Shown here in pieces: positions 5,133 to 52,062 of a stretch of 64,000 nt of DNA. A program made the position numbers and the translations under genes. A model generated the notes under the pieces. The model made no database searches, was not told where the DNA came from, and saw only the letters and a program-made list of their open reading frames with translations. The stretch's first letter is position 1. Each line of letters starts with the position of its first letter. Location of the stretch: IMG/VR virus record IMGVR_UViG_3300031857_000002, positions 1-64,000 of that record. One strand, 5' to 3'.

Positions 5133-5488
5133 TGTAGTACTAGTCTGGCTGCGTATTGATTGGGAACTGTGCTGGCGTTGATACCCAGCAATGTAGCTCG
5201 GCTACGGATTGAATTAAGATAGTAAGCCAGGCTTGCTGTGAGATTCAATCCTGTCTGGCCTTTCATTGCGTCTAGCAACGTCAGTGCAGGTATATTGGTT
5301 TCTTCGGCTACTCTAAACAAACTCACAGTGAAGTTGCCAGCAATACGAGCTGTGGCCATTACACTGCGAAAATACGAATACACAATATCATACTCGTCTG
5401 CAGGAACATTGACATCGTAGTTGTAAAAACTGTCAAATACTCTGACAGTTAAGTCTTTGTTATAGTTGGTATAATTTACTGTGCTCAT
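5129..5488 (-). CDS. hypothetical protein
   Basis: 119-aa ORF coupled (ATGA overlaps) in the tail operon. Confidence 0.7.
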   Translation of the reverse strand: MSTVNYTNYNKDLTVRVFDSFYNYDVNVPADEYDIVYSYFRSVMATARIAGNFTVSLFRVAEETNIPALTLLDAMKGQTGLNLTASLAYYLNSIRSRATLLGINASTVPNQYAARLVLQ

Positions 5489-6669
5489 ACCCCACCGCCT
5501 GCAATTTGTCCTTGGTTGATCTGATTCAATGTGGCTGTGTTACGTGCCGCGGTTGCTGTTGGAAAAAACACTCCATCGGCTTTGTTGGCTACACTGCGAA
5601 TAGCGCCGGGTAAACTGCCTACAATCACTTGTGTACCAATTGCAGTGACTTCTGATTTGACAATACTCTTGAGATTTTTGCCTTTGAATGTGTTGTAAAC
5701 TGTGCTGGCTTTTTGTGCCGCGCCAAGCAGACCCAGTACAGACCCTGACTGCAAGTCGCTGGAAATGCCGCCTGCAACATCTAATATACCACCTTGACCC
5801 AAAATAGTAGCTGTGGTACCAGGGCGAGCCAATGGACTTGGTGTTGTATCGTAGTGTGCTGGATTGGCAAAGCCAGGAGCAGACTTGTTGGGTGCGCCTT
5901 GTTTGTATTTCACAGTTTCGTAAGCAATGGTCATGGAGTGTTGCATGAGTCCGTTGCCTTGACTGTAGTCATAGGTGTCATGTGCCCAGTTTGAAATCAA
6001 CGGATTGATCAGAATGTATTCAGCAAACTTGTGCTGATAGTCAAATCCAAAAATTCTAATGTCAGAGAAAAACGGTGGCTTGCCTGATGAGCTTGTTGTG
6101 CCGTCATCAATTGCCTCGCCAATATAGCCCCAGTCGTTAACTCCGCCCATGCGGTCTTGATTGTAAATGTCTCGGCCGTTGTAGCCAAATCCTTTGGTGC
6201 CATTGCCTTCTGCACCCATGCTGCCATTGTTGTTGTTGGTAGAGCCATATGCCTGGCTGGCGTCTTTGTAGTAGTAGCTGTAGTAGTTGTACCACATGTT
6301 ACGCACTAGGTCAGAGCCGTCATCATGAAAAGTGATATTCACAGGATCATAGTTGATCTTGGTTTGAATCACACGTTTGCGATTGTACTGATTGAGTGTT
6401 TCTGTAGCAATAGTGTACTTAGGCAGGTCAACTGTTTTGACTACCAAACTAAGATTAGCAATGTCTTGTAGACCAATTGCGCCACGTATTTTGGGAATTA
6501 CTGCTGAGTTGATTGTGAACGCTACATGAAATAAAAACTTAAATCGTGGTTTGAGTTCGTAACCGTTGGGGGTAAAAACACGATTTGCGTGATCGTAACC
6601 ACGCAAACCATCTACTGCGCTAAATCCTTTGAAGATTTGCTGACCAAATGATGCTAACGACGATGACAT
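5485..6669 (-). CDS. tail tube-like protein (gp19/gp54 family tube initiator)
   Basis: PRFKFLFHV, VKTVDLP, Y.PVNITFHDD and YDYS...Q.S.TIAYE motifs of the tube fold; lies next to gp19. Confidence 0.7.
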   Translation of the reverse strand: MSSSLASFGQQIFKGFSAVDGLRGYDHANRVFTPNGYELKPRFKFLFHVAFTINSAVIPKIRGAIGLQDIANLSLVVKTVDLPKYTIATETLNQYNRKRVIQTKINYDPVNITFHDDGSDLVRNMWYNYYSYYYKDASQAYGSTNNNNGSMGAEGNGTKGFGYNGRDIYNQDRMGGVNDWGYIGEAIDDGTTSSSGKPPFFSDIRIFGFDYQHKFAEYILINPLISNWAHDTYDYSQGNGLMQHSMTIAYETVKYKQGAPNKSAPGFANPAHYDTTPSPLARPGTTATILGQGGILDVAGGISSDLQSGSVLGLLGAAQKASTVYNTFKGKNLKSIVKSEVTAIGTQVIVGSLPGAIRSVANKADGVFFPTATAARNTATLNQINQGQIAGGGV

Positions 6670-6687: not shown

Positions 6688-7323
6688 TTAGCTGGCTGCA
6701 CCAGCACCTGTAACAACGTCACCTAGTGTTCGGCCAATTGCACCACCAACACCAGCACCGTTAGACCCTGATGGGATCTGGTTGGCGTTATCGTACGCAA
6801 TACCCAGACTGATTGTAACTACTGCGCTTTCAGCATAGCTTAATTGCCCGTAGTCTGCTGACTTCAAGTAGCAGCCATACAACTCCCAAGTTTCAAGAAC
6901 TGTGGGTTCAGCAGAGCCGTTGCCACCGTCTAGGATTTCCAACCGTGTTAGGAACTTGTAGTCAATACCAGAACTGGCTGAAGCCATTTCCAAAAAGTCC
7001 ATCTGCTTTTGAAGTTGCGACCCGACTAATTTACTCACTGAGCCTGATGCGTCGTCACGAATTTCGCAAGTGACATCAGCCCATGTAGGTTTGCCGGCCA
7101 ACTTCAGGGTTGAGTTGTAGATTGGTATAGTAATGTCTTCAAAACTCAGATTGGGTCTGTTAAAAGTCATTACCTGTTTTGTTAATTCAGTGGTAGGGCT
7201 TGCGCTTGCGCCAAAGTTCTCAAAAAACACACGGAAGCGATATTTGAGTTTGGGCATCAACAAGCCCTGATCAGCCTGGCCGCCCAGTGGAACTGACATT
7301 CTTGATAGTGATGAACTTGCCAT
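6688..7323 (-). CDS. tail tube protein (gp19-like)
   Basis: LMPKLKYRFRV, RPNLSF, AGKPTW, ETWELYGC, YDNA motifs; follows the sheath gene; AGGAG RBS. Confidence 0.85.
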   Translation of the reverse strand: MASSSLSRMSVPLGGQADQGLLMPKLKYRFRVFFENFGASASPTTELTKQVMTFNRPNLSFEDITIPIYNSTLKLAGKPTWADVTCEIRDDASGSVSKLVGSQLQKQMDFLEMASASSGIDYKFLTRLEILDGGNGSAEPTVLETWELYGCYLKSADYGQLSYAESAVVTISLGIAYDNANQIPSGSNGAGVGGAIGRTLGDVVTGAGAAS

Positions 7324-7390: not shown

Positions 7391-10300
7391 TTAGGATGCC
7401 TGTCCTGAGATTTCGCCAGTGTTCTTGATACGCAATGGAATGTAGATAAATTCCACAGCTTTTACTGGCTCAATAGCAATATCCAACCACAACTCATTGC
7501 GGTCAATACGTGCTGGAGTATTGTTACTCAAGTCGCAAACCACCAAGTAGTCATAGATACCACGCTTGGCCACCAAGTCAATCATCAAGCTGTTGACTGT
7601 GTTGGTGATTTCGGCACGAGTAATATCGTCATTGGGTTCAAACAAATACAGTTTGCCAATTTCTTCAAGTCTACCACGCAAGAACGCAACCAAACGACTT
7701 ACATTGATACGATCCAGTGCGCTGGTAATACTGGTTGTGGTCTTGTTACCAAAGTTAACAATACCCACACCTGGAATAAAGGTAATTGGGTTGATGTCGT
7801 TTTCATACAAGACATCACGTAGACCTTGTCCCATGTTCAACTGCTGGAATTCACCAGTGGCTGCATCAATATAACCAATAGCAATAGCATTGTCAACAAC
7901 GCCACGACGTGTACCAGCAGGGGCTAACCATGGATAGCTCACTGCATCACTGCGGATAATAGTACGCATCATCATGTGACTTGGTGCTGTTACCACTGTG
8001 TTGCCTGACAAATCTGTGGTCTGGCAGCTTGGATAGAATGTGCCCAAGTACTGGCTGGCAGTTACTAGTCCGTCTTCTGTTCGGAAACCTAGTCCGCCAT
8101 TGTTTGTGGCCCAGGCAGCAAGATCTGTACCTGTTGCAGGCAAACGCATTGGAGTATCACCAACCACAAACAGTGTGTTGTTACGCTCATTGCTGAGTGC
8201 AACCATGTTAGGAATCAACTCTGGATAAGCTGTGGCAGCAATCAAGCTGAACTGATTTTGTTCTTCACGTGCTGCTTCGCTAGTGTCAATGCCTGCTTTC
8301 ATTGCTTGAATGATCAACTGACGTTGTGCTTGACGACCTGACCACATGGCACCGTCGTCTCTGTTGCCAGACGCTGTTAACCAAGTGCTCTTGACTGTTG
8401 GCAGTGTGTCATCAGGATATGATTCAGCATTGAAGTAATCACTTTGGAAGCTCTTGACATTGTATCCTGAACGGCGTGTGTTAAACAACAACATACCTTC
8501 AGGATATAGATCAGGATTAGGAGCATCTAAATCCAAGTAATTGCTAGTTAACAAACTTTCAATAGTTGGGAACGGATCCATCACAGGATCAGTTGTGCCA
8601 TTGCCGGCCCAACGTGCATCTGCAAACAAGATACCATTTTGTGTAACCTGGTCTGTGGTGTCAACTTCTACCCACTGTGCAACACCGCTCACTAGTTCCC
8701 AACGATACAGTTTGGGATAGTTTTCCAGGTCGCTGGTGTCAATCCACAAATCACCGTACTCCAACTGCGTACCGTCACTTTGTTCAATAGGAGCGGTGGC
8801 AGCAATCAACGGCCCTGCAGGGTCTGTGTCGCTTAGATCAAACCCACGAACATCGTTGGTATCGTTTCGATAACCAACCCAGGCTCCGCTGTTCTGAATC
8901 AAGATATCTGCATCGCTTACTGTGCTGTAGTACCACAAGCGGCCATCTACAGGATCTTGATCAGGTTCTGTGGTACTAGCAGTATAGGTAAATTCTGGTG
9001 CTGTTACCCAATTGCTCAATGTAAGTGTGTCTACTGCTGTAAATGATGGCAAGCAACCTGGGGTGTCAACGGTAAATCCAGCCAATGTTACAGGAGTTCC
9101 AGTAATATTTTTCAAACTCATATTGCCGCCATTGGAGTGTGTAAGCACAATTGCTCCAGATGAGTTTACGCTGGCGCTGACGTTGGGGATATTAGCCGAG
9201 CTTACCGCTGTGATAAAAGCAGCAGTGTTTGTGCCACTTATAGTAACAGTAGCAGATTGACTGATACCACTAGTCTGGGTTCCTGAAATCTCAAATTGAG
9301 TTCCATTTACAAATGGTCCAGGTGTAGCCGTAGATCCTGTAATTATAGTAGCACCAAGCGTGCTACGTTCAAGAATTTCCAAAGCCATGAGCGGTTCAAC
9401 ACTGGCGGCGCCAATGGCGTCCCAAATTGCAATAGTGGTACCAACTGGAATATTTTTGCCTCCGCCTGTGGGGTCTAGTGTATAATTTGCTAGGCGTAGA
9501 TTTGCATAAGTTGTTGTTGTTTGACTAACAAATGTGCCTAGGGCTGAGCTGTATTTTTTAATCCTTAAAGCTACACCGCTGTTAGCAGGACTCATGTTGT
9601 TCCATACAGAGCCTGTAGGTGATGGCCAATTAGTTGTAGTGACTGGTTGACCAACTGCCCAACGTGGTGCCTGATAACTGTATGAAGGCAAGTATGTTGG
9701 TGCGTAGTACACTCCAGCAGGGATACCAAGTGCAGTTAACAATGCAGCCGAGCTGGTAATATTAATATCAATTGCGCCGCCAACCAAGCTACTAACGTCA
9801 GGGGTAGTAAGGCTGTTTGCAGTTAGTTGTAATTTACTTGATACAACTGACGCAGTAACTCCTGGAATTGCAGCGGCATTGATATCAATAGACAACTGAG
9901 CCAATGTGTTGGTAGCAGAAACAGTAACAGTGACACCATTAATCACAATAATATTACCAACTGTAAGGCTAGTTGGTGATCCTGTTCCTGTGATAGTGGG
10001 CCAAGACACTTTCCACGCATCGCTGCCGACTAATACCCATGCATTTGATGAATTTTTATAATAGCCTGGATTTGATGTAGCCACTGCTGAAATAGCATAG
10101 TCACCAATACTGCCAATTGATGCAACAGGTGTGTAGTTATCATTCTCAAAATCTACTACATCTGCTGTGTCAGTGATAACAATAGGAGTTTTTACTGTGA
10201 ATGTGTTGGTGGTTTGATTCCACTCCTGGATGCCCCACAAACTTGTTGATGTATCTAACCAATAGTCGCCGTCGTTGGGGGTGCCTGTAGGACGAACTAA

Positions 10301-10666
10301 ACTAGCAGTTAGTTCTGACAAGTCAATGTTGGCACGTTGTACATAGCAACGATTTGTAATGCCCAGGGATGAATACGCAGCCAGTAAGCCGTATTCATTG
10401 AGCTCATAGCCGTTGATTGGTGTACCTGTTGTGGTCTGATAGAAGAATGGCACGCCAAATGTGGCAGCCAAGTCTCGTTGACTTGTGATTAGATACGTCT
10501 TATTGGCATTTGCTGCCAATGTTCCAGCGGCAACTGTTACGCCATCTGAACTTACTTTATTCTGTGCAGTAGCGATTAAAAAATACGGTACTGTGTTAAC
10601 AGCGGAAGGGATATATTGACTTTCGTCAATAACTGTTACTTCTACGCCTGGTGATACTAGAGCCAT
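7391..10666 (-). CDS. contractile tail sheath protein (gp18-like), enlarged
   Basis: Starts MALVSPGVEVTVIDES; C-terminal PWLAPAGTRRG, INPI, GNKT, LDRINVSRL, LFEPND, CDLSNNTP..ID, EFIYIP; AAGGA RBS. Confidence 0.95.
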   Translation of the reverse strand: MALVSPGVEVTVIDESQYIPSAVNTVPYFLIATAQNKVSSDGVTVAAGTLAANANKTYLITSQRDLAATFGVPFFYQTTTGTPINGYELNEYGLLAAYSSLGITNRCYVQRANIDLSELTASLVRPTGTPNDGDYWLDTSTSLWGIQEWNQTTNTFTVKTPIVITDTADVVDFENDNYTPVASIGSIGDYAISAVATSNPGYYKNSSNAWVLVGSDAWKVSWPTITGTGSPTSLTVGNIIVINGVTVTVSATNTLAQLSIDINAAAIPGVTASVVSSKLQLTANSLTTPDVSSLVGGAIDINITSSAALLTALGIPAGVYYAPTYLPSYSYQAPRWAVGQPVTTTNWPSPTGSVWNNMSPANSGVALRIKKYSSALGTFVSQTTTTYANLRLANYTLDPTGGGKNIPVGTTIAIWDAIGAASVEPLMALEILERSTLGATIITGSTATPGPFVNGTQFEISGTQTSGISQSATVTISGTNTAAFITAVSSANIPNVSASVNSSGAIVLTHSNGGNMSLKNITGTPVTLAGFTVDTPGCLPSFTAVDTLTLSNWVTAPEFTYTASTTEPDQDPVDGRLWYYSTVSDADILIQNSGAWVGYRNDTNDVRGFDLSDTDPAGPLIAATAPIEQSDGTQLEYGDLWIDTSDLENYPKLYRWELVSGVAQWVEVDTTDQVTQNGILFADARWAGNGTTDPVMDPFPTIESLLTSNYLDLDAPNPDLYPEGMLLFNTRRSGYNVKSFQSDYFNAESYPDDTLPTVKSTWLTASGNRDDGAMWSGRQAQRQLIIQAMKAGIDTSEAAREEQNQFSLIAATAYPELIPNMVALSNERNNTLFVVGDTPMRLPATGTDLAAWATNNGGLGFRTEDGLVTASQYLGTFYPSCQTTDLSGNTVVTAPSHMMMRTIIRSDAVSYPWLAPAGTRRGVVDNAIAIGYIDAATGEFQQLNMGQGLRDVLYENDINPITFIPGVGIVNFGNKTTTSITSALDRINVSRLVAFLRGRLEEIGKLYLFEPNDDITRAEITNTVNSLMIDLVAKRGIYDYLVVCDLSNNTPARIDRNELWLDIAIEPVKAVEFIYIPLRIKNTGEISGQAS

Positions 10667-10690
10667 GGTCAATTCCTTTTCAAGATACAA

Positions 10691-46706: not shown

Positions 46707-49697
46707 TTACATGGAAGTTTGCAGTATTCTTTCCTGCACACTAACCGAGTTCTTTTGCTCTCTGATCATGTCTGACATTGCATTTATAAGCTGTTCTGTT
46801 TGCTCTCGCATGACGTTGACCAGTTCAGTCATTGCTCTGTTGTCTGATGATGCTACCGCAGTAACTTCACGCTCGGGTGCATCTTTCATGCTTTGCATCA
46901 TACCTTCAAACATCTTTTTCACGTCTGGCATTTCTAAATTGATAGGTATTGCCCCGTTGTCCAAAGGTATCATTGCCTCTGGGCCTTTTTCAGCCACCAT
47001 GGCAATTTGTGGAGTTGATGCAAGTCCGCCATCTGCATAGCCAGGAATCTGTGCATGAATATGTCCTGCTGTGGCTTTTGCACTGGGATTGTTGTACTCA
47101 TCAATGGCTACACTGGCACCCATGCTTTTGAGCCAGTTTGTGATTTCTTTGCCTTCTTCAACTGAAGGCTGTTTTGACAGTGCAAAGTCCATGGCACGAC
47201 CTGTGGTATGACTACTGCTAGGAGATTTTTCCTGATGGAACTTGTCGTTAAATCCAGAGAAATAAGCAAAATTAGGCATGTTGGCCTGTACTTGCTGTGC
47301 TAGTTCAATAATCTTGGGATCAATTTTACTGCCTTCGGCCTGCACATCGCCTGTCTTGAGCTTGAGCCCTATCTTGGTAAGATCGTTCTGCGATGCTATA
47401 CCTCCAGCAACACCTTGCCCTCCGCCCATGGCAGGCATGTTCCCTGCGGCAGGCATTTTCATCCCTGCACCTCCTGTCGCTCCACCAGTAGCAGATGATC
47501 CAGCGGCTGCTGTTTTTTGTTGCAAGATATCAATCTGTGACTTGAGATCCGGAGTTTCTAGATCCATCAACTGAGTTTTGAGATCCACATAACTCTTGTA
47601 TGCTATGCTGTATTTTTCAGCACGTTTTGTGTCTGCATCTGTAAGTCGTTCTAGTTTTACTGAATCTTTGGCTATTTCATCAAAGGCATCATCCATTTCT
47701 CTAGACCCTGTGGTCATGGACTTGGATACTACTGACAGTGTTGACATCAATGACTTTACTGTGTCTGCAGCCGACGGACCTGTTAAGGATGGTTGTTTTC
47801 CAAGCACTGACTCTGATGGGCTTGTTAAAGATTTTTGTTTACCGAGCACTGATTGTGCTGTGCCTGTTTTGGTCCCGTTGTCTAATTCAGACATTGGTAT
47901 CACAGCTTCTTCTCCATGAAGCATGGCCAGATACCCCGAAGTTGGCCCTTTAAGAATACCTCCATCAGCGGCTTTTGGTAATCCTGACATCTCGCCAAGA
48001 CCCTTTCCAAGTTCTTTACCTGCAGTGCCTCCTGCCCAGACACCAAGTGCTGATCCAATCAATCCACCTACCACTGCACCAACTGCATTGCCAATAATTG
48101 GAACTGCTGTGCCTAATGCGGCACCTACGGCTGCTCCTTTAAGGCCACCAGCAACTCCAAGGCCGATTGCACCAGCTCCTTCTCCAAGATTTTCTGCTGT
48201 GCTAGCAGTGACTTTCTTACCACCTGGAGTCAGTTCATTTAACATGTTGGCAGCGTTTTTAGTAGCAGTTGCTAGTGTTATCATAGCATCTTGTGCTGGA
48301 CCAATACCTTTCTCGATAAATGCTTCCATGGCCTTGTTGGCATCAATCTGAGCTTTAATTAACTGTGCTTGCTTGGCCAGCAACGGATCAACTCCGCCTT
48401 CAAGTATTTTTTGTTGATCTGCTTTGATCTTGGCCATGTTGACCGTGATATCACCTTGTGCCAACTGTGCTAATTTTAGTTGCTCGTTGATAGGACCAAA
48501 ACTTTCATTGTATGCACCAAACTGTCCCAGTACCACACCTACGCTGTCTGCAGTCTTGCCCATAGCTGTACCAGTTATGGTCACCGCATCAGTATAACTC
48601 ATTTGACCCGCAATAACTTTTTGCGTGGTCTCTAGCATGGCTCCGTTACTGGCCAAGTTGGCTGCTTGTGCATCAGCATTGCTTAGGTTACCTGTAACTG
48701 ATGCTTGGAAAGCGGCTGCCATCTTGGGTCCAGCCGCTTCGTAAATTGCGTTCATTTTCATCAGTTCTTCGGCTGCTTTTTTACCTTCGGGGCCTTGCAA
48801 TTGCAGTTCACGAATCTTGGCAGCAAACTGTTCACCTTGTAACGCACGCTCACGTTGATCTTCCATTTCCTTGCGTGTCTGACCAGTGAGCTTGGTCAAT
48901 GCATCTTGTTCAACTAGATACTTTTTAGCACCGTCAGCAAGTTCAGCATTGGTTTTACCTTGAGCATTGCCCAGGCGTGTCTGTATCTTTAGATAACCTA
49001 ACATGCCGTCAGACACGTCAGCCATGCTCATGCCCATTTTTAAGAAGTCTTCTCTACTGCCTTCAAGAGCTTGACCCATGTCGCCAAGACGTTGTCGTCC
49101 TTCATACACTGATCCAGAAAACAATGCTAGATCTTTGCTGTTGGCTGCAATTTGCCCCACAAACACATCTAGTTCACCTACACTGAGTCCCAGCTGATCA
49201 CTGGCTTTTTTGACTCCTGTCATGCCATCGCTAGCGGCTCCTCCAGCCTTGCTCAATCCTGAATATGTTTTGTATAACTGGTCTGCCATGGTGTTGGCAG
49301 CTTTGGTATAGGCTGCAAACGCACCTACTGCGGCTGTGACTCCTGCAATCAACAAGCCAACTACTTTGCCAAATGGATTCATTAGAGCTAGTGCCACTGC
49401 GGCTGCTGTTGCTGCCTGGGCCATGCTGTCAATGCTTTCGTTGAATGCGGTTGCACCTTTTTTGCCTTCCAACATGGCCTTGCCCGATGCCATTGCTGCC
49501 GCAGCCACATAACTGGCTGCCTCCCCAAATTTTTCTGCACCTTTGGTAGCATTGTTAATGCCGTATTTGGCTTTGACTTGAGCGTCGTGCATGTCTTCCG
49601 AAGTTAGTTTGGTTAGTTTGCCAAACTGAGCCATATCGTAATTTACTTGTTCTAGTATTCGAGCAAGTTCTTCCATCTGTGCATTTGTGTCGGCCAT
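46707..49697 (-). CDS. tape-measure-like / baseplate hub protein with C-terminal M15-like peptidase motif
   Basis: 996 aa, Ala/Gly-rich helical with two hydrophobic glycine-zipper segments; S.HTTGRAMDF...GHIHA motif; divergent from gp26. Confidence 0.65.
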   Translation of the reverse strand: MADTNAQMEELARILEQVNYDMAQFGKLTKLTSEDMHDAQVKAKYGINNATKGAEKFGEAASYVAAAAMASGKAMLEGKKGATAFNESIDSMAQAATAAAVALALMNPFGKVVGLLIAGVTAAVGAFAAYTKAANTMADQLYKTYSGLSKAGGAASDGMTGVKKASDQLGLSVGELDVFVGQIAANSKDLALFSGSVYEGRQRLGDMGQALEGSREDFLKMGMSMADVSDGMLGYLKIQTRLGNAQGKTNAELADGAKKYLVEQDALTKLTGQTRKEMEDQRERALQGEQFAAKIRELQLQGPEGKKAAEELMKMNAIYEAAGPKMAAAFQASVTGNLSNADAQAANLASNGAMLETTQKVIAGQMSYTDAVTITGTAMGKTADSVGVVLGQFGAYNESFGPINEQLKLAQLAQGDITVNMAKIKADQQKILEGGVDPLLAKQAQLIKAQIDANKAMEAFIEKGIGPAQDAMITLATATKNAANMLNELTPGGKKVTASTAENLGEGAGAIGLGVAGGLKGAAVGAALGTAVPIIGNAVGAVVGGLIGSALGVWAGGTAGKELGKGLGEMSGLPKAADGGILKGPTSGYLAMLHGEEAVIPMSELDNGTKTGTAQSVLGKQKSLTSPSESVLGKQPSLTGPSAADTVKSLMSTLSVVSKSMTTGSREMDDAFDEIAKDSVKLERLTDADTKRAEKYSIAYKSYVDLKTQLMDLETPDLKSQIDILQQKTAAAGSSATGGATGGAGMKMPAAGNMPAMGGGQGVAGGIASQNDLTKIGLKLKTGDVQAEGSKIDPKIIELAQQVQANMPNFAYFSGFNDKFHQEKSPSSSHTTGRAMDFALSKQPSVEEGKEITNWLKSMGASVAIDEYNNPSAKATAGHIHAQIPGYADGGLASTPQIAMVAEKGPEAMIPLDNGAIPINLEMPDVKKMFEGMMQSMKDAPEREVTAVASSDNRAMTELVNVMREQTEQLINAMSDMIREQKNSVSVQERILQTSM

Positions 49698-49738: not shown

Positions 49739-50581
49739 ATGACCCAAACTGCTAACCCGCTGAGACATTTTTTTAGACAACCAGCAATCTATCTTCGCTT
49801 GCCGTCAGATGGCAACTTCTGGCCCGAAGGCGATATTGCAATGACACAAAATCGCGAACTGCCGGTGTTGCCCATGACTGCCATAGACGAAATTACCTAT
49901 CGCACACCTGATGCCCTGTTCAACGGACAAGCTGTGATTTCAGTGATTCAAAGCTGTATTCCCAACATTAAAAATGCATGGTCAGCGCCCGGGCTTGACG
50001 TCAATGCTATTTTGATTGCTATCCGTATTGCCAGTTATGGGCACAACATGGGCATCAGTACTACTTGTCCAAAATGTCAAACCGAAGAACAGTACGAAAT
50101 TGATCTTCGCAACATGTTGGATCAGATTGCGTCACCTGACTACACCCAGACTATCACACACGGTGATTTGGAAATTGCGTTTCAGCCAGTGTCGTACAAG
50201 AATCAAAACGACACCAATCAAATGCAGTTTGAAGAACAGCGCATGATTCGTGCTATTCCTGGATCAGACTTGCCTGACGAAGAAAAGATACAAAAGCTCA
50301 ATGCTGCCTTGAAGCGTATTACTGAGCTCACAGTAGATGCCATGCAGTTCAGCATTGCCAGCATTAGAACTCCACAAGCCCTGGTCACTGAATCTCAGTT
50401 TATTCAAGAGTTTTTAAACAACTGCGATCGTAACTTGTTCAGCAAAATACGTGATCGTGTGATTGAGCTCAGAGTTGCTAGTGACTTGAAACCTATCAAG
50501 ATCACATGTACCAATTGTAGCAATGAATACGAACAATCAATGAATCTGGATCAAGCAAGTTTTTTCGAAACCGCCTCCTGA
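49739..50581 (+). CDS. baseplate hub assembly protein (gp26-like)
   Basis: NPL..FFRQP.IY..LPS, PMTA.DE, D...IL.AIR.AS.G, CPKC and CTNC Zn knuckles, ends ..SFF. Confidence 0.8.
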   Translation: MTQTANPLRHFFRQPAIYLRLPSDGNFWPEGDIAMTQNRELPVLPMTAIDEITYRTPDALFNGQAVISVIQSCIPNIKNAWSAPGLDVNAILIAIRIASYGHNMGISTTCPKCQTEEQYEIDLRNMLDQIASPDYTQTITHGDLEIAFQPVSYKNQNDTNQMQFEEQRMIRAIPGSDLPDEEKIQKLNAALKRITELTVDAMQFSIASIRTPQALVTESQFIQEFLNNCDRNLFSKIRDRVIELRVASDLKPIKITCTNCSNEYEQSMNLDQASFFETAS

Positions 50582-50607
50582 CCGCTTCAGCAGAACAAGT
50601 TTCTGCT

Positions 50608-50796
50608 ATGATTGACAGAATGGACCAGGAGGCCAATGACTTAAAACGTCAAGGGTTAAAAATGTCTTGGTACATGCGTGGCGGTGCCAGTTACAATGAT
50701 GTGATGAACATGAGTCATCAAGAACGGCAAATGGTCAGTGAACTGATCAAAGACAACTTAGACACAACTAAATCTAGCAAATTACCATTCTTCTAA
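50608..50796 (+). CDS. small gp51-like ORF; possibly the -1 frameshift extension of the gp26-like gene
   Basis: WYMRGG..Y....M...ER motif; its frame is open back to the slippery heptamer at 50560. Confidence 0.6.
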   Translation: MIDRMDQEANDLKRQGLKMSWYMRGGASYNDVMNMSHQERQMVSELIKDNLDTTKSSKLPFF

Positions 50797-51299
50797 TGTA
50801 CATTGAACAAGTCAAACAAGATATTGAAAATTGGATTGTGAACTTTGTAGAAGTTCCACATCCTGCCTTGGGTGGATTTCCGCCTTGTCCTTATGCCCGC
50901 AGTTCAAGACTCAAAAACAGTTACGATGTGTTCATTGGATCTGATCCGTATTTTGATCTCAAGAATCGAGCACGACATGGCATGGGCAACAAAGAAGTTG
51001 TGATATATGCATACGATCCTGTGGAATGGCCACATGACTTGTTTGCTGCCAGTTTAGATCATGCCAATCAAGACTTTTTGTTGACAGCCAACTTACTAAC
51101 CCTGGAAGATCATCCTGCTGACCAAGAAATTGTAAACGGCATCTGCATGAATCAAGGCACATATGCCCTGGCTCTTGTGCAGAGTCTCAGTGATCTCAAC
51201 ATCAAAGCACGGCTCATGGCCAGCAAAGGATTTTATGATTCTTGGCCAGAAGATTATCTAACTGCACTGTTTCAGCACAGAGAGGATCCTCGCAAATGA
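50796..51299 (+). CDS. hypothetical protein (DUF1415-like: W...FV......PCPYA...EDHP)
   Basis: 167 aa; TAATG coupling to the upstream stop. Confidence 0.55.
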   Translation: MYIEQVKQDIENWIVNFVEVPHPALGGFPPCPYARSSRLKNSYDVFIGSDPYFDLKNRARHGMGNKEVVIYAYDPVEWPHDLFAASLDHANQDFLLTANLLTLEDHPADQEIVNGICMNQGTYALALVQSLSDLNIKARLMASKGFYDSWPEDYLTALFQHREDPRK

Positions 51300-51727
51300 C
51301 ATATCAGTTTGCTAGAATTAATCTAGAAAAAACTACCTACAAGCCTGCAGTTGATTGGTTTTACATCACCAAACCCAACATTGCAGAACTACAAGACATA
51401 TACAGAACCTATTGCACATACAAACACTTTGCCAGTGTAATGCCGCTGTTTGACAGTCAGTTCACAGAGCCAGGCACAGATTTGATTGGTTATAGAGATC
51501 AAGGGCAGTTAGTAGCGTTTTCCATGATGAAACGTTACGACGACAAAAATTTATTAGCCGCACAATTTGCCTGGAACTATCGTAAACCTCGACTACGTTT
51601 GGGAATATCAAGTTTACAGACAGAATGTGCAATCTACAGAGAGCGAGGATTTGAGTACTTGTACTTGGATCAAGCTCACTTGTACAAACAGGACCTTGAA
51701 GGTTTTGAAATACTAGGACCACTATAA
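51296..51727 (+). CDS. GNAT-fold protein resembling the aminoacyl-tRNA-protein transferase (Ate/Bpt) C-terminal domain
   Basis: YR..G.LVAFS...LG..SL..E....R..GF.YLYL....YK....FE.L matches the Ate C-domain pattern. Confidence 0.55.
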   Translation: MTYQFARINLEKTTYKPAVDWFYITKPNIAELQDIYRTYCTYKHFASVMPLFDSQFTEPGTDLIGYRDQGQLVAFSMMKRYDDKNLLAAQFAWNYRKPRLRLGISSLQTECAIYRERGFEYLYLDQAHLYKQDLEGFEILGPL

Positions 51728-52062
51728 TGGACATTTACACAATTTGGGCAGACAAAGAAGGCGACATCTCAGACTTGGACTGGGTCAACGGCATGAAGAG
51801 CTTTTTTGATCATTTGAAATCAGAAGGCCGGATGGAAGACTATCGCATCACTAGATGCAAGATGGGATTCAGAAGTATCGCAGACATGCCCGAATGGATG
51901 ATACTCATGGAGTTCAAGGACATGGCTCAAATGGACTCGGCATTTAAACGTGTTGCTCCTCTTGAAGGAGAACTAGAAGCCAAACACAAGTCGTTCAATC
52001 AGTTTGTATCAGGCACAATACAACATGCATTGTTTCGTGATTGGCCTGACCAAAATCTATGA
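51727..52062 (+). CDS. DUF6614-like dimeric alpha/beta-barrel protein
   Basis: Y..W.D...D.......FF.HL..EG....YR.TR.K.GF......E....EF....Q.D.AF..V....G..E..H. Confidence 0.55.
   Translation: MDIYTIWADKEGDISDLDWVNGMKSFFDHLKSEGRMEDYRITRCKMGFRSIADMPEWMILMEFKDMAQMDSAFKRVAPLEGELEAKHKSFNQFVSGTIQHALFRDWPDQNL

Follow-up and report, generated by a model that had tools for sequence, protein, structure and literature searches.

Comparative evidence that a gp26-like baseplate hub gene of a freshwater virus is very likely decoded by programmed -1 ribosomal frameshifting

Our analysis indicates that a single gp26-like baseplate hub gene in the virus record IMGVR_UViG_3300031857_000002 very likely gives rise to two proteins through programmed -1 ribosomal frameshifting, with slipping itself and its efficiency being inferred in the absence of protein, ribosome-profiling or reporter evidence. 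In the mechanism that we propose, most ribosomes would translate positions 49739-50581 into a 280-aa gp26-like protein, while some would slip one base back on U UUU UUC (50560-50566), where both tRNA-Phe can re-pair on UUU, aided by a predicted helix located 6 nt downstream (50573-50580 with 50626-50633). The slipped ribosomes would then read CGA AAC CGC and onward up to TAA 50794-50796, generating a 352-aa product with the same body and a 76-residue helical tail. T4 gp26 would be the counterpart of the short form and T4 gp51 that of the long form, both being non-virion chaperones required for assembly of the baseplate hub around the tape-measure protein. Lambda G/GT would provide the logic, in which a chaperone and its extended form, encoded beside the tape-measure gene, are made at a fixed ratio.

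The window, i.e., the whole stretch of DNA that was analysed, corresponds to the first 64 kb of a virus record of 320,175 bp that is 92% complete according to CheckV. Near-identical sequence was found in lake-water and freshwater metagenomes, and a blastn search of the locus against phage records returned no match. The hub gene (Table 1) is the sole PF12322 gene in the 320-kb genome, and its product, which contains two CxxC pairs, matched PF12322 in Pfam (1.9e-14, residues 63-276) and phrog_150 'baseplate hub' in PHROGs (5.1e-18). The gene ends with AGT TTT TTC GAA ACC GCC TCC TGA, in which the third base of the AGT codon provides the X of the heptamer. The -1 frame has no stop from 50527 to 50796, runs through FFRNRLLTASAEQVSAM into ATG 50608, and gives a predicted fusion of 276 + 76 = 352 aa with the junction ...ASFF/RNRLLTASAEQVSAM... 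and the C-terminus LPFF. AF2 modelled the hub protein with a pLDDT of 85.7, the last nine residues, at the junction, being disordered, and the extension, also with a pLDDT of 85.7, as a four-helix module. The divergent neighbour is syntenic with a 'virion structural protein' of PA5oct, 121Q and RaK2 and is followed by a T4-type portal gene, while the tube and sheath genes lie at 6.7-10.7 kb of the window, far from the hub gene.

Table 1. Coordinates of the features of the putative frameshift locus and of related genes in the window.
Feature	Position	Strand	Remarks
Hub gene, 0 frame, gp26-equivalent (likely)	49739..50581	+	280 aa, PF12322 T4_baseplate
Slippery heptamer T TTT TTC	50560-50566	+	X XXY YYZ register, 0 frame; octamer TTTTTTCG 50560-50567 invariant
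Spacer, heptamer to helix	50567..50572	+	6 nt
Predicted helix, 5' arm GCCUCCUG	50573..50580	+	Overlaps 0-frame stop TGA 50579-50581
Predicted helix, 3' arm CAGGAGGC, register 1	50626..50633	+	Some relatives pair 21 nt further downstream
Inner hairpin AGCAGAA/UUCUGCU	50589..50607	+	Within outer-helix loop; present here, not conserved
-1 frame coding segment	50566..50796	+	76 codons + TAA; first base re-read is C50566
Tape-measure-like divergent neighbour	46707..49697	-	996 aa; phrog_167 tail length tape measure, 1.4e-8
Tail tube protein gene	6688-7320	-	

The original prediction, made from the sequence alone, had placed the heptamer at the end of the gp26-like gene, an open -1 frame leading into ATG 50608 to give a fusion of about 350 aa, and a tape-measure-like gene as the immediate divergent neighbour; all three claims held, with the heptamer in the correct register. 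Its central claim, a programmed -1 frameshift joining the two reading frames, is supported by the comparisons described below. The check that it had proposed, the presence of the heptamer and an open -1 frame in homologues, was passed without exception wherever the extension lies in the -1 frame.

The slip signal is conserved at the nucleotide level beyond what the protein requires, since the residue preceding the two phenylalanines varies while the T stays. We fetched 80 relatives from IMG/VR with amino acid identities of 53-96%, of which 79 were readable and 69 distinct. All 79 readable sequences carried TTTTTTC 19 nt upstream of the stop, and the octamer TTTTTTCG showed zero entropy in 69/69 distinct relatives while the neighbouring third positions were saturated. 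The codon bearing the X encoded Ser, Asn, Ala, Thr or Leu across these relatives, with a final T every time, and Phe-Phe pairs found elsewhere in the same hub genes used all four codon pairs. Given an x-F-F motif, the expected frequency of T TTT TTC was 0.064 per independent lineage. In-frame X XXY YYZ heptamers are common in the long ORFs of the window (48 in 18,888 codons), so that the site alone is unremarkable and its conservation is what counts.

The same signal was recovered well outside of this clade. Searches with tblastn detected the hub gene at approximately 30% identity in jumbo phages, with T TTT TTC present in Phosso, Atu_ph07, PA5oct, 121Q, RaK2, Yen9-04 and Salicola SCTP-2, and T TTT TTT in XacN1, Xoo-sp13 and RsoM2USA; the conserved extension was in the -1 frame in all ten of these distant phages. 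Additionally, IMG/VR provided 59 distinct loci of the cyanophage type, and 59/59 kept T TTT TTC G at a distance of 10 nt from the stop (a combined count of heptamer invariance covered 69 + 54 distinct sequences), and the gp26 gene of cyanophage S-RIM4 ends in GCT TTT TTC GAG TAG. In Mel-JY01, LIS04, SP-15 and HSE3 the homologous extension is in the +1 frame, so a -1 slip is not a feature of the whole family.

The clade alignment showed an open -1 reading frame on which coding selection acts from the shift site onward. Before the heptamer, the third positions of the 0 frame were the most variable, and from the hub stop on, ahead of any ATG, the peak of variability moved to the third positions of the -1 frame, where entropy was 1.25, 0.88 and 1.58 at codon positions 1, 2 and 3, respectively. 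This periodicity was already visible before +48, the site of the ATG of the window, and residues F1, F2, R3, L6 and L7 of the extension were invariant in the clade. No conserved start accompanies this coding signal: the first ATG of the -1 frame in the 69 sequences was located at +48 in 29, at +60 in 25 and elsewhere in seven, with none within 100 nt in the remaining eight, and in PA5oct there was no ATG, GTG or TTG within 100 nt in the -1 frame. ATG 50608 is thus internal to the extension and not conserved. The extension conserved in the cyanophage-type loci (60-66 aa) likewise lacks a conserved start. Gene callers assigned 58-96 aa to the downstream ORF, and its GenBank annotation varies from full to partial or none. 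The lack of a Shine-Dalgarno sequence before ATG 50608, which had been put forward as evidence for the frameshift, is weak and uninformative, since a GGAG, GAGG or AGGA motif was found upstream of only 20/43 long ORFs in the window.

A downstream RNA helix may contribute to the slip, and its conservation as a stimulatory element is suggestive, not proven, and rests on model prediction. The minimum free energy fold contains an 8-bp helix that begins 6 nt after the heptamer (-25.2 kcal/mol, z -4.3). At least five consecutive base pairs starting from the position of the 5' arm could be formed in 65/69 relatives vs 21% of codon-shuffled controls, and at least seven in 53/69 relatives (77%) vs 3.9% of these controls. 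The 3' partner occurs either at +73 or at +94, two mutually exclusive registers that are 21 nt apart: register 1 only was found in 43 relatives, register 2 only in 19, both in three and neither in four (Fisher p 2.3e-10, not corrected for phylogeny). Compensation was observed where a 5' arm changed to GCCUCUU is matched by the partner AAGAGGC, and the Glu codon in the 3' partner was GAG in 45/50 cases. The 5-bp core of the helix is unvarying in the clade, and classical covariation amounts to one or two positions besides the register switch. Moreover, both arms are also coding (RLL and AS in the 5' arm, EA in the 3' arm), and part of their conservation could therefore be at the protein level.

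Other helices of different sequence are predicted 5-7 nt after the heptamer in the distant phages, with 10 bp in Phosso and Atu_ph07 and 11 bp in XacN1, where Xoo-sp13 shows a G-U change. The z values of these helices ranged from -2.1 to -6.3; 121Q, RaK2 and Yen9-04 gave only weak support for a structure and cyanophage S-RIM4 gave none (z +0.6), and a search of the locus in Rfam gave no family match. The conserved outer stem had gone unnoticed in the original prediction, which pointed instead to the 7-bp hairpin just before ATG 50608. The pairing of this hairpin held and its role as stimulator was rejected: it starts 22 nt past the heptamer and is not conserved in relatives, pairing in 43% of cells vs 29-48% in slid controls.

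The two predicted products are homologous to T4 gp26 and gp51. Both T4 proteins (208 and 249 aa) match PF12322 end to end (8.8e-64 and 3.9e-52), gp51 having about 48 additional C-terminal residues (Gp51_C in newer Pfam), so that the domain is shared by all three proteins. When a profile built from 45 non-redundant predicted fusion proteins was compared with a profile of 92 gp51 homologues, 221 columns aligned across the junction to the C-terminus (Prob 88%, P 2.8e-6), with FFRxRLL...EEI of the fusion facing xFKLLxNPDEx of gp51 and Y....M...ER.....LI.K present in both. The extension alone scored 25.7 against the gp51 tail in profile-profile comparison, and the maximum in 200 column-shuffled controls was 16.5. 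The cyanophage extension matched both the gp51 tail (Prob 94.6%, P 6.8e-8) and the extension of the window's clade (Prob 93.4%, P 2.5e-7), and in S-RIM4 the 3' part of the -1 extension is annotated as 'baseplate hub assembly catalyst', i.e., gp51.

This homology of the extension emerged only by profile-profile comparison and with the cyanophage intermediates. When the T4 gp51 tail was compared with a single HMM built from the extensions, the score was 2 bits, which was not significant and was exceeded by shuffles; precomputed Pfam annotation of the small downstream ORFs contained no PF28602 match; and Pfam and PHROGs searches with the 62-aa ORF or the 78-aa extension found no meaningful family. 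With regard to the hub protein, fold matches in BFVD were T4-like baseplate hub assembly proteins with TM up to 0.90, while comparison of its model with PDB folds gave no Foldseek match at E <= 0.001 and only generic helical hairpins with VIA-align, and a PDB sequence search returned one marginal match, 9hnh_A (E 0.006). The downstream ORF had been called 'gp51-like' at the outset, and this description held more strongly than it was meant, as the extension and the C-terminal tail of T4 gp51 are homologous.

From this homology, it is likely that gp26 has its counterpart in the 0-frame product and gp51 in the -1 product, because the fusion aligns with gp51 across the junction, PF12322 is shared, a single gene is present here, and the heptamer is missing where the genes are separate. 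The predicted -1 product is collinear with gp51 including the Gp51_C tail, and the 0-frame product terminates where gp26 does. T4 differs in having two divergently transcribed paralogous genes with no heptamer (TTC TTT) and no overlap, whereas one putatively recoded gene is found here. The heptamer was missing from the gp26 end in six T4-type phages in which gp26 and gp51 are separate genes; this end reads TTC TTT, TTT ATT or lacks FF altogether, and in these phages gp26 stops right where the gp51 tail begins. These negative controls were drawn from contigs encoding gp51 homologues, the search with T4 gp26 having given only seven near-identical loci.

Among the alternative explanations, the best supported is that the downstream ORF is an ordinary small gene translated from ATG 50608 or 50620, for instance by termination-reinitiation after TGA 50579, and that the heptamer is a by-product of a conserved Phe-Phe motif combined with T-rich codon use. 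In its favor, an in-frame ATG occurs 27 nt past the hub stop, databases list ORFs of this kind as genes of their own, FF is a motif of the family that T4 gp26 shares, and TTT accounts for 68% of the Phe codons. Nonetheless, the start is not conserved and PA5oct has none at all, while the -1 periodicity and the invariant residues begin at the heptamer, upstream of all candidate starts. Besides, the T before the Phe codons is constant though the residue changes, FF and heptamer are both lost in those T4-type phages that have a separate gp51, and the single-ORF homologue gp51 has the junction in frame. Taken jointly, the independent gene and the by-product heptamer are very unlikely, and programmed frameshifting remains the preferred reading; it is still possible that ATG 50608 and ATG 50620 additionally give an independent short product in this phage.

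Transcriptional slippage, in which RNA polymerase would add one U on the T6 run and thereby yield the long form, is also very unlikely. The site is a homopolymer, and it reaches T7 in XacN1 and Xoo-sp13 and T9 in RsoM2USA, lengths that do slip, so a contribution of this mechanism is possible in RsoM2USA. Six T followed by an invariant C is a short run for polymerase slippage. The strict X XXY YYZ register, the invariant C at Z, the 6-nt spacer and the predicted helix are features of ribosomal frameshifting and not of slippage during transcription, and no run-length variant was seen in DNA and metatranscriptome contigs, which is a weak test, as assembly drops rare variants. Finally, a fortuitous overlap in which the -1 ORF belongs to no functional protein, for which it can be said that in-frame heptamers are not rare, is all but excluded by the conservation of the extension at the protein level across lake-water jumbo phages, cyanophages and T4 gp51, and by its confident modelling as a four-helix module.

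Under the ribosomal frameshifting that we favor, the role of the two forms as chaperones is inferred from T4 genetics and is not shown here. T4 gp26 and gp51 have been classed as hub assembly chaperones, and gp51 is described as an essential protein that is not part of the particle and whose function is unknown (PMC3004832). In the PA5oct record, an ESI-MS/MS flag is found on the portal and tape-measure-like neighbours and none on the hub gene, as far as record annotation alone can tell. The tape-measure-like 996-aa protein is the likely client of the putative chaperones, its binding being inferred. G/GT chaperones are classically encoded between tube and tape measure (PMC5009743), and the order sheath-tube-PF12322-tape measure is found among Gram-positive relatives in the Listeria phage LIS04 and the Bacillus phages SP-15 and HSE3, and likewise in the Microcystis phage Mel-JY01, whose large downstream ORF is unnamed. 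The ORF downstream of the PF12322 gene is annotated as tape measure in LIS04 and HSE3, as 'putative tail protein' in SP-15 and as hypothetical in Mel-JY01; in the jumbo phages, the PF12322 gene abuts the tape-measure-like gene.

The G/GT analogy drawn in the original prediction is backed by this gene position, and the chaperone function that it assumed remains an inference. The frameshift of lambda gpG/gpGT and of the tail-assembly chaperones of long-tailed phages was described by Levin (1993) and Xu, Hendrix and Duda (2004) and is summarised in PMC5009743. As in lambda, the putative -1 slip is located near the 3' end of a small gene for a presumed non-virion chaperone, the short and long products would have a common N-terminal body, and the gene adjoins that of the tape measure. 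Unlike in lambda, the body belongs to PF12322, carries Cys pairs and is 280 aa long, vs approximately 140 aa for gpG, the gene is divergent from the tape measure and far from the tube and sheath genes, and the heptamer is U UUU UUC instead of G GGA AAG. No similarity in sequence or fold to solved chaperones was found, and the search of the hub protein against Pfam revealed no chaperone family. Considering that known chaperones are very diverse, the missing similarity weakens the case for homology and not that for analogy; by analogy, the system would resemble G/GT in its working, with partner binding inferred, and no homology to gpG/gpT could be demonstrated.

The mechanism and its logic are already known, and what appears to be new is their extension to the gp26/gp51 family and the reading of the T4 pair as a hard-wired version. 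None of the 15 GenBank records that we inspected has a joined CDS annotated, the word frameshift is absent from the genome papers of PA5oct, RaK2, 121Q and Atu_ph07, and no report of a frameshift in gp26/gp51-type genes was found in the open-access literature searched. A 2016 review of recoding regarded T4 as an exception to G-T frameshifting (PMC5009743). We lean, by a narrow margin, towards a scenario in which the T4-like and jumbo contractile-tail phages, too, descend from ancestors with the tail-chaperone frameshift, and T4 gp26/gp51 is a G/GT pair that became fixed as paralogues after duplication of the recoded gene. If this is true, T4 would no longer be an exception to the G/GT rule, the function of gp51 would be that of an extended chaperone form, and the cyanophage T4 core genes '26' and '51' would be a single recoded gene.

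On the favored frameshift reading itself, relatives of T4 would frameshift in the gp26 gene, with gp51 as the long product, the slipping being again inferred. This would give gp26 and gp51 a function that can be tested: they would be one chaperone in a short and an extended version, working together with the tape-measure/hub protein. Hundreds of cyanophage and jumbo-phage genomes would have their annotation corrected, as their small 'gp51' or hypothetical ORFs would be fragments of trans-frame proteins. The -1 slip, the +1 arrangement and the two separate genes would also offer a natural series for a recoding site replaced by gene duplication.

The predicted signal can also be compared with the frameshift cassettes of the IS3 family and dnaX. 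IS elements employ the U_UU.U_UU.C motif, which is efficient in E. coli; its class, H_HH.U_UU.Y, ranks there with the most efficient -1 motifs (PMC4066793). The likeness to the IS3-family and dnaX cassettes includes the X XXY YYZ heptamer, a spacer of 5-8 nt and a downstream helix. The locus described here differs from them in that no upstream Shine-Dalgarno-like enhancer was seen and in that the predicted helix is long-range, closing a loop of 45 nt (or approximately 68 nt), vs a compact hairpin or pseudoknot in these systems.

The cassette is conserved at the nucleotide level, as illustrated by contigs from metagenomes and metatranscriptomes: those of diverged relatives align with an island of about 40 nt (window 50541-50586), comprising the heptamer and GCCUCC, and with no other part of the window, and they diverge on either side of it. 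The 5' arm of the proposed stimulatory helix, GCCUCCU (window 50573-50579), is similar to the end of 16S rRNA that carries the anti-Shine-Dalgarno sequence; within the 3' arm there is a perfect AGGAGG (window 50627-50632). Once freed, this AGGAGG might conceivably pause ribosomes as well, but its position is too far downstream for a classical upstream enhancer.

At the protein level, the extension has a strongly conserved end, ...TTKKSGLPFF (window 50776-50793), in which P76 and F78 are invariant across the window's clade, and the extensions of Phosso and Atu_ph07 finish ...LPIL and ...IPIL, respectively. Judging from its appearance only, this tail may represent a short docking peptide. In the records of other phages the extension is left unannotated (PA5oct and RaK2) or annotated only in part (Atu_ph07), and in cyanophage records a 43-aa fragment of it is named gp51, which together amount to systematic annotation gaps. 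In T4, gp26 and gp51 are divergently transcribed paralogues that both belong to PF12322 (L085, the T4 locus compared here, and also loci L186-L189). The C-terminus of gp26 reads ...FFELL before its stop, and gp51 runs on from exactly that point as ...VFKLLVNPDEI..., so that T4 gp26 resembles a gp51-type gene cut short after the junction.

Positions of extensions, the T4 pair and other window genes (L handles denote phage loci compared with the window)
Feature	Locus	Coordinates	Strand	Annotation or match
+1-frame extension, Microcystis phage Mel-JY01	L090	2234-2470
+1-frame extension, Listeria phage LIS04	L092	3214-3440
+1-frame extension, Bacillus phage SP-15	L093	3121-3320
+1-frame extension, Bacillus phage HSE3	L094	3231-3401
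Extension, PA5oct	L003	3334-3561		unannotated
Extension, RaK2	L096	2022-2245		unannotated
Extension, Atu_ph07	L002	3331-3567		annotated only as 40-aa fragment
T4 gp26/gp51 pair	L085	3803-4429 and 4480-5229	(-) and (+)
210-aa tube protein	window	6688-7323	(-)	phrog_4542, 4.5e-48
393-aa tail-tube-like paralogue	window	5485-6669	(-)
ORF downstream of cassette	window	51242-51727		PF04377, sub-threshold
Next ORF	window	51727-52062		DUF6614, 5.6e-23

In Mel-JY01, LIS04, SP-15 and HSE3, the homologous extension lies in frame +1 relative to the PF12322 gene (profile E 8e-9 to 6e-8); the -1 frame controls were negative. In three of the four, a run of six or seven T stands at the same Phe-Phe motif, HSE3 has TTC TTT plus its own ATG, and no ATG follows the hub stop in LIS04. 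This arrangement points to a variant with +1 or -2 recoding, or else to initiation independent of the hub gene. The slip site of Ralstonia phage RsoM2USA is a run of nine T (L089, its locus, 2266-2274) with a perfect 11-bp hairpin 14 nt after it and, given the length of the run, transcriptional slippage possibly supplements or replaces ribosomal slippage there.

Elsewhere in the window, two tail-tube-like genes lie side by side below the sheath gene (7391-10690), about 40 kb away from the chaperone and tape-measure pair, so this genome carries its tail module in separate parts. The ORF downstream of the cassette matched the arginyl-tRNA-protein transferase C-terminal domain at 8.8e-5 and 23.5 bits, below the cut-off of 25, and both this ORF and the DUF6614 ORF are unusual beside tail genes.
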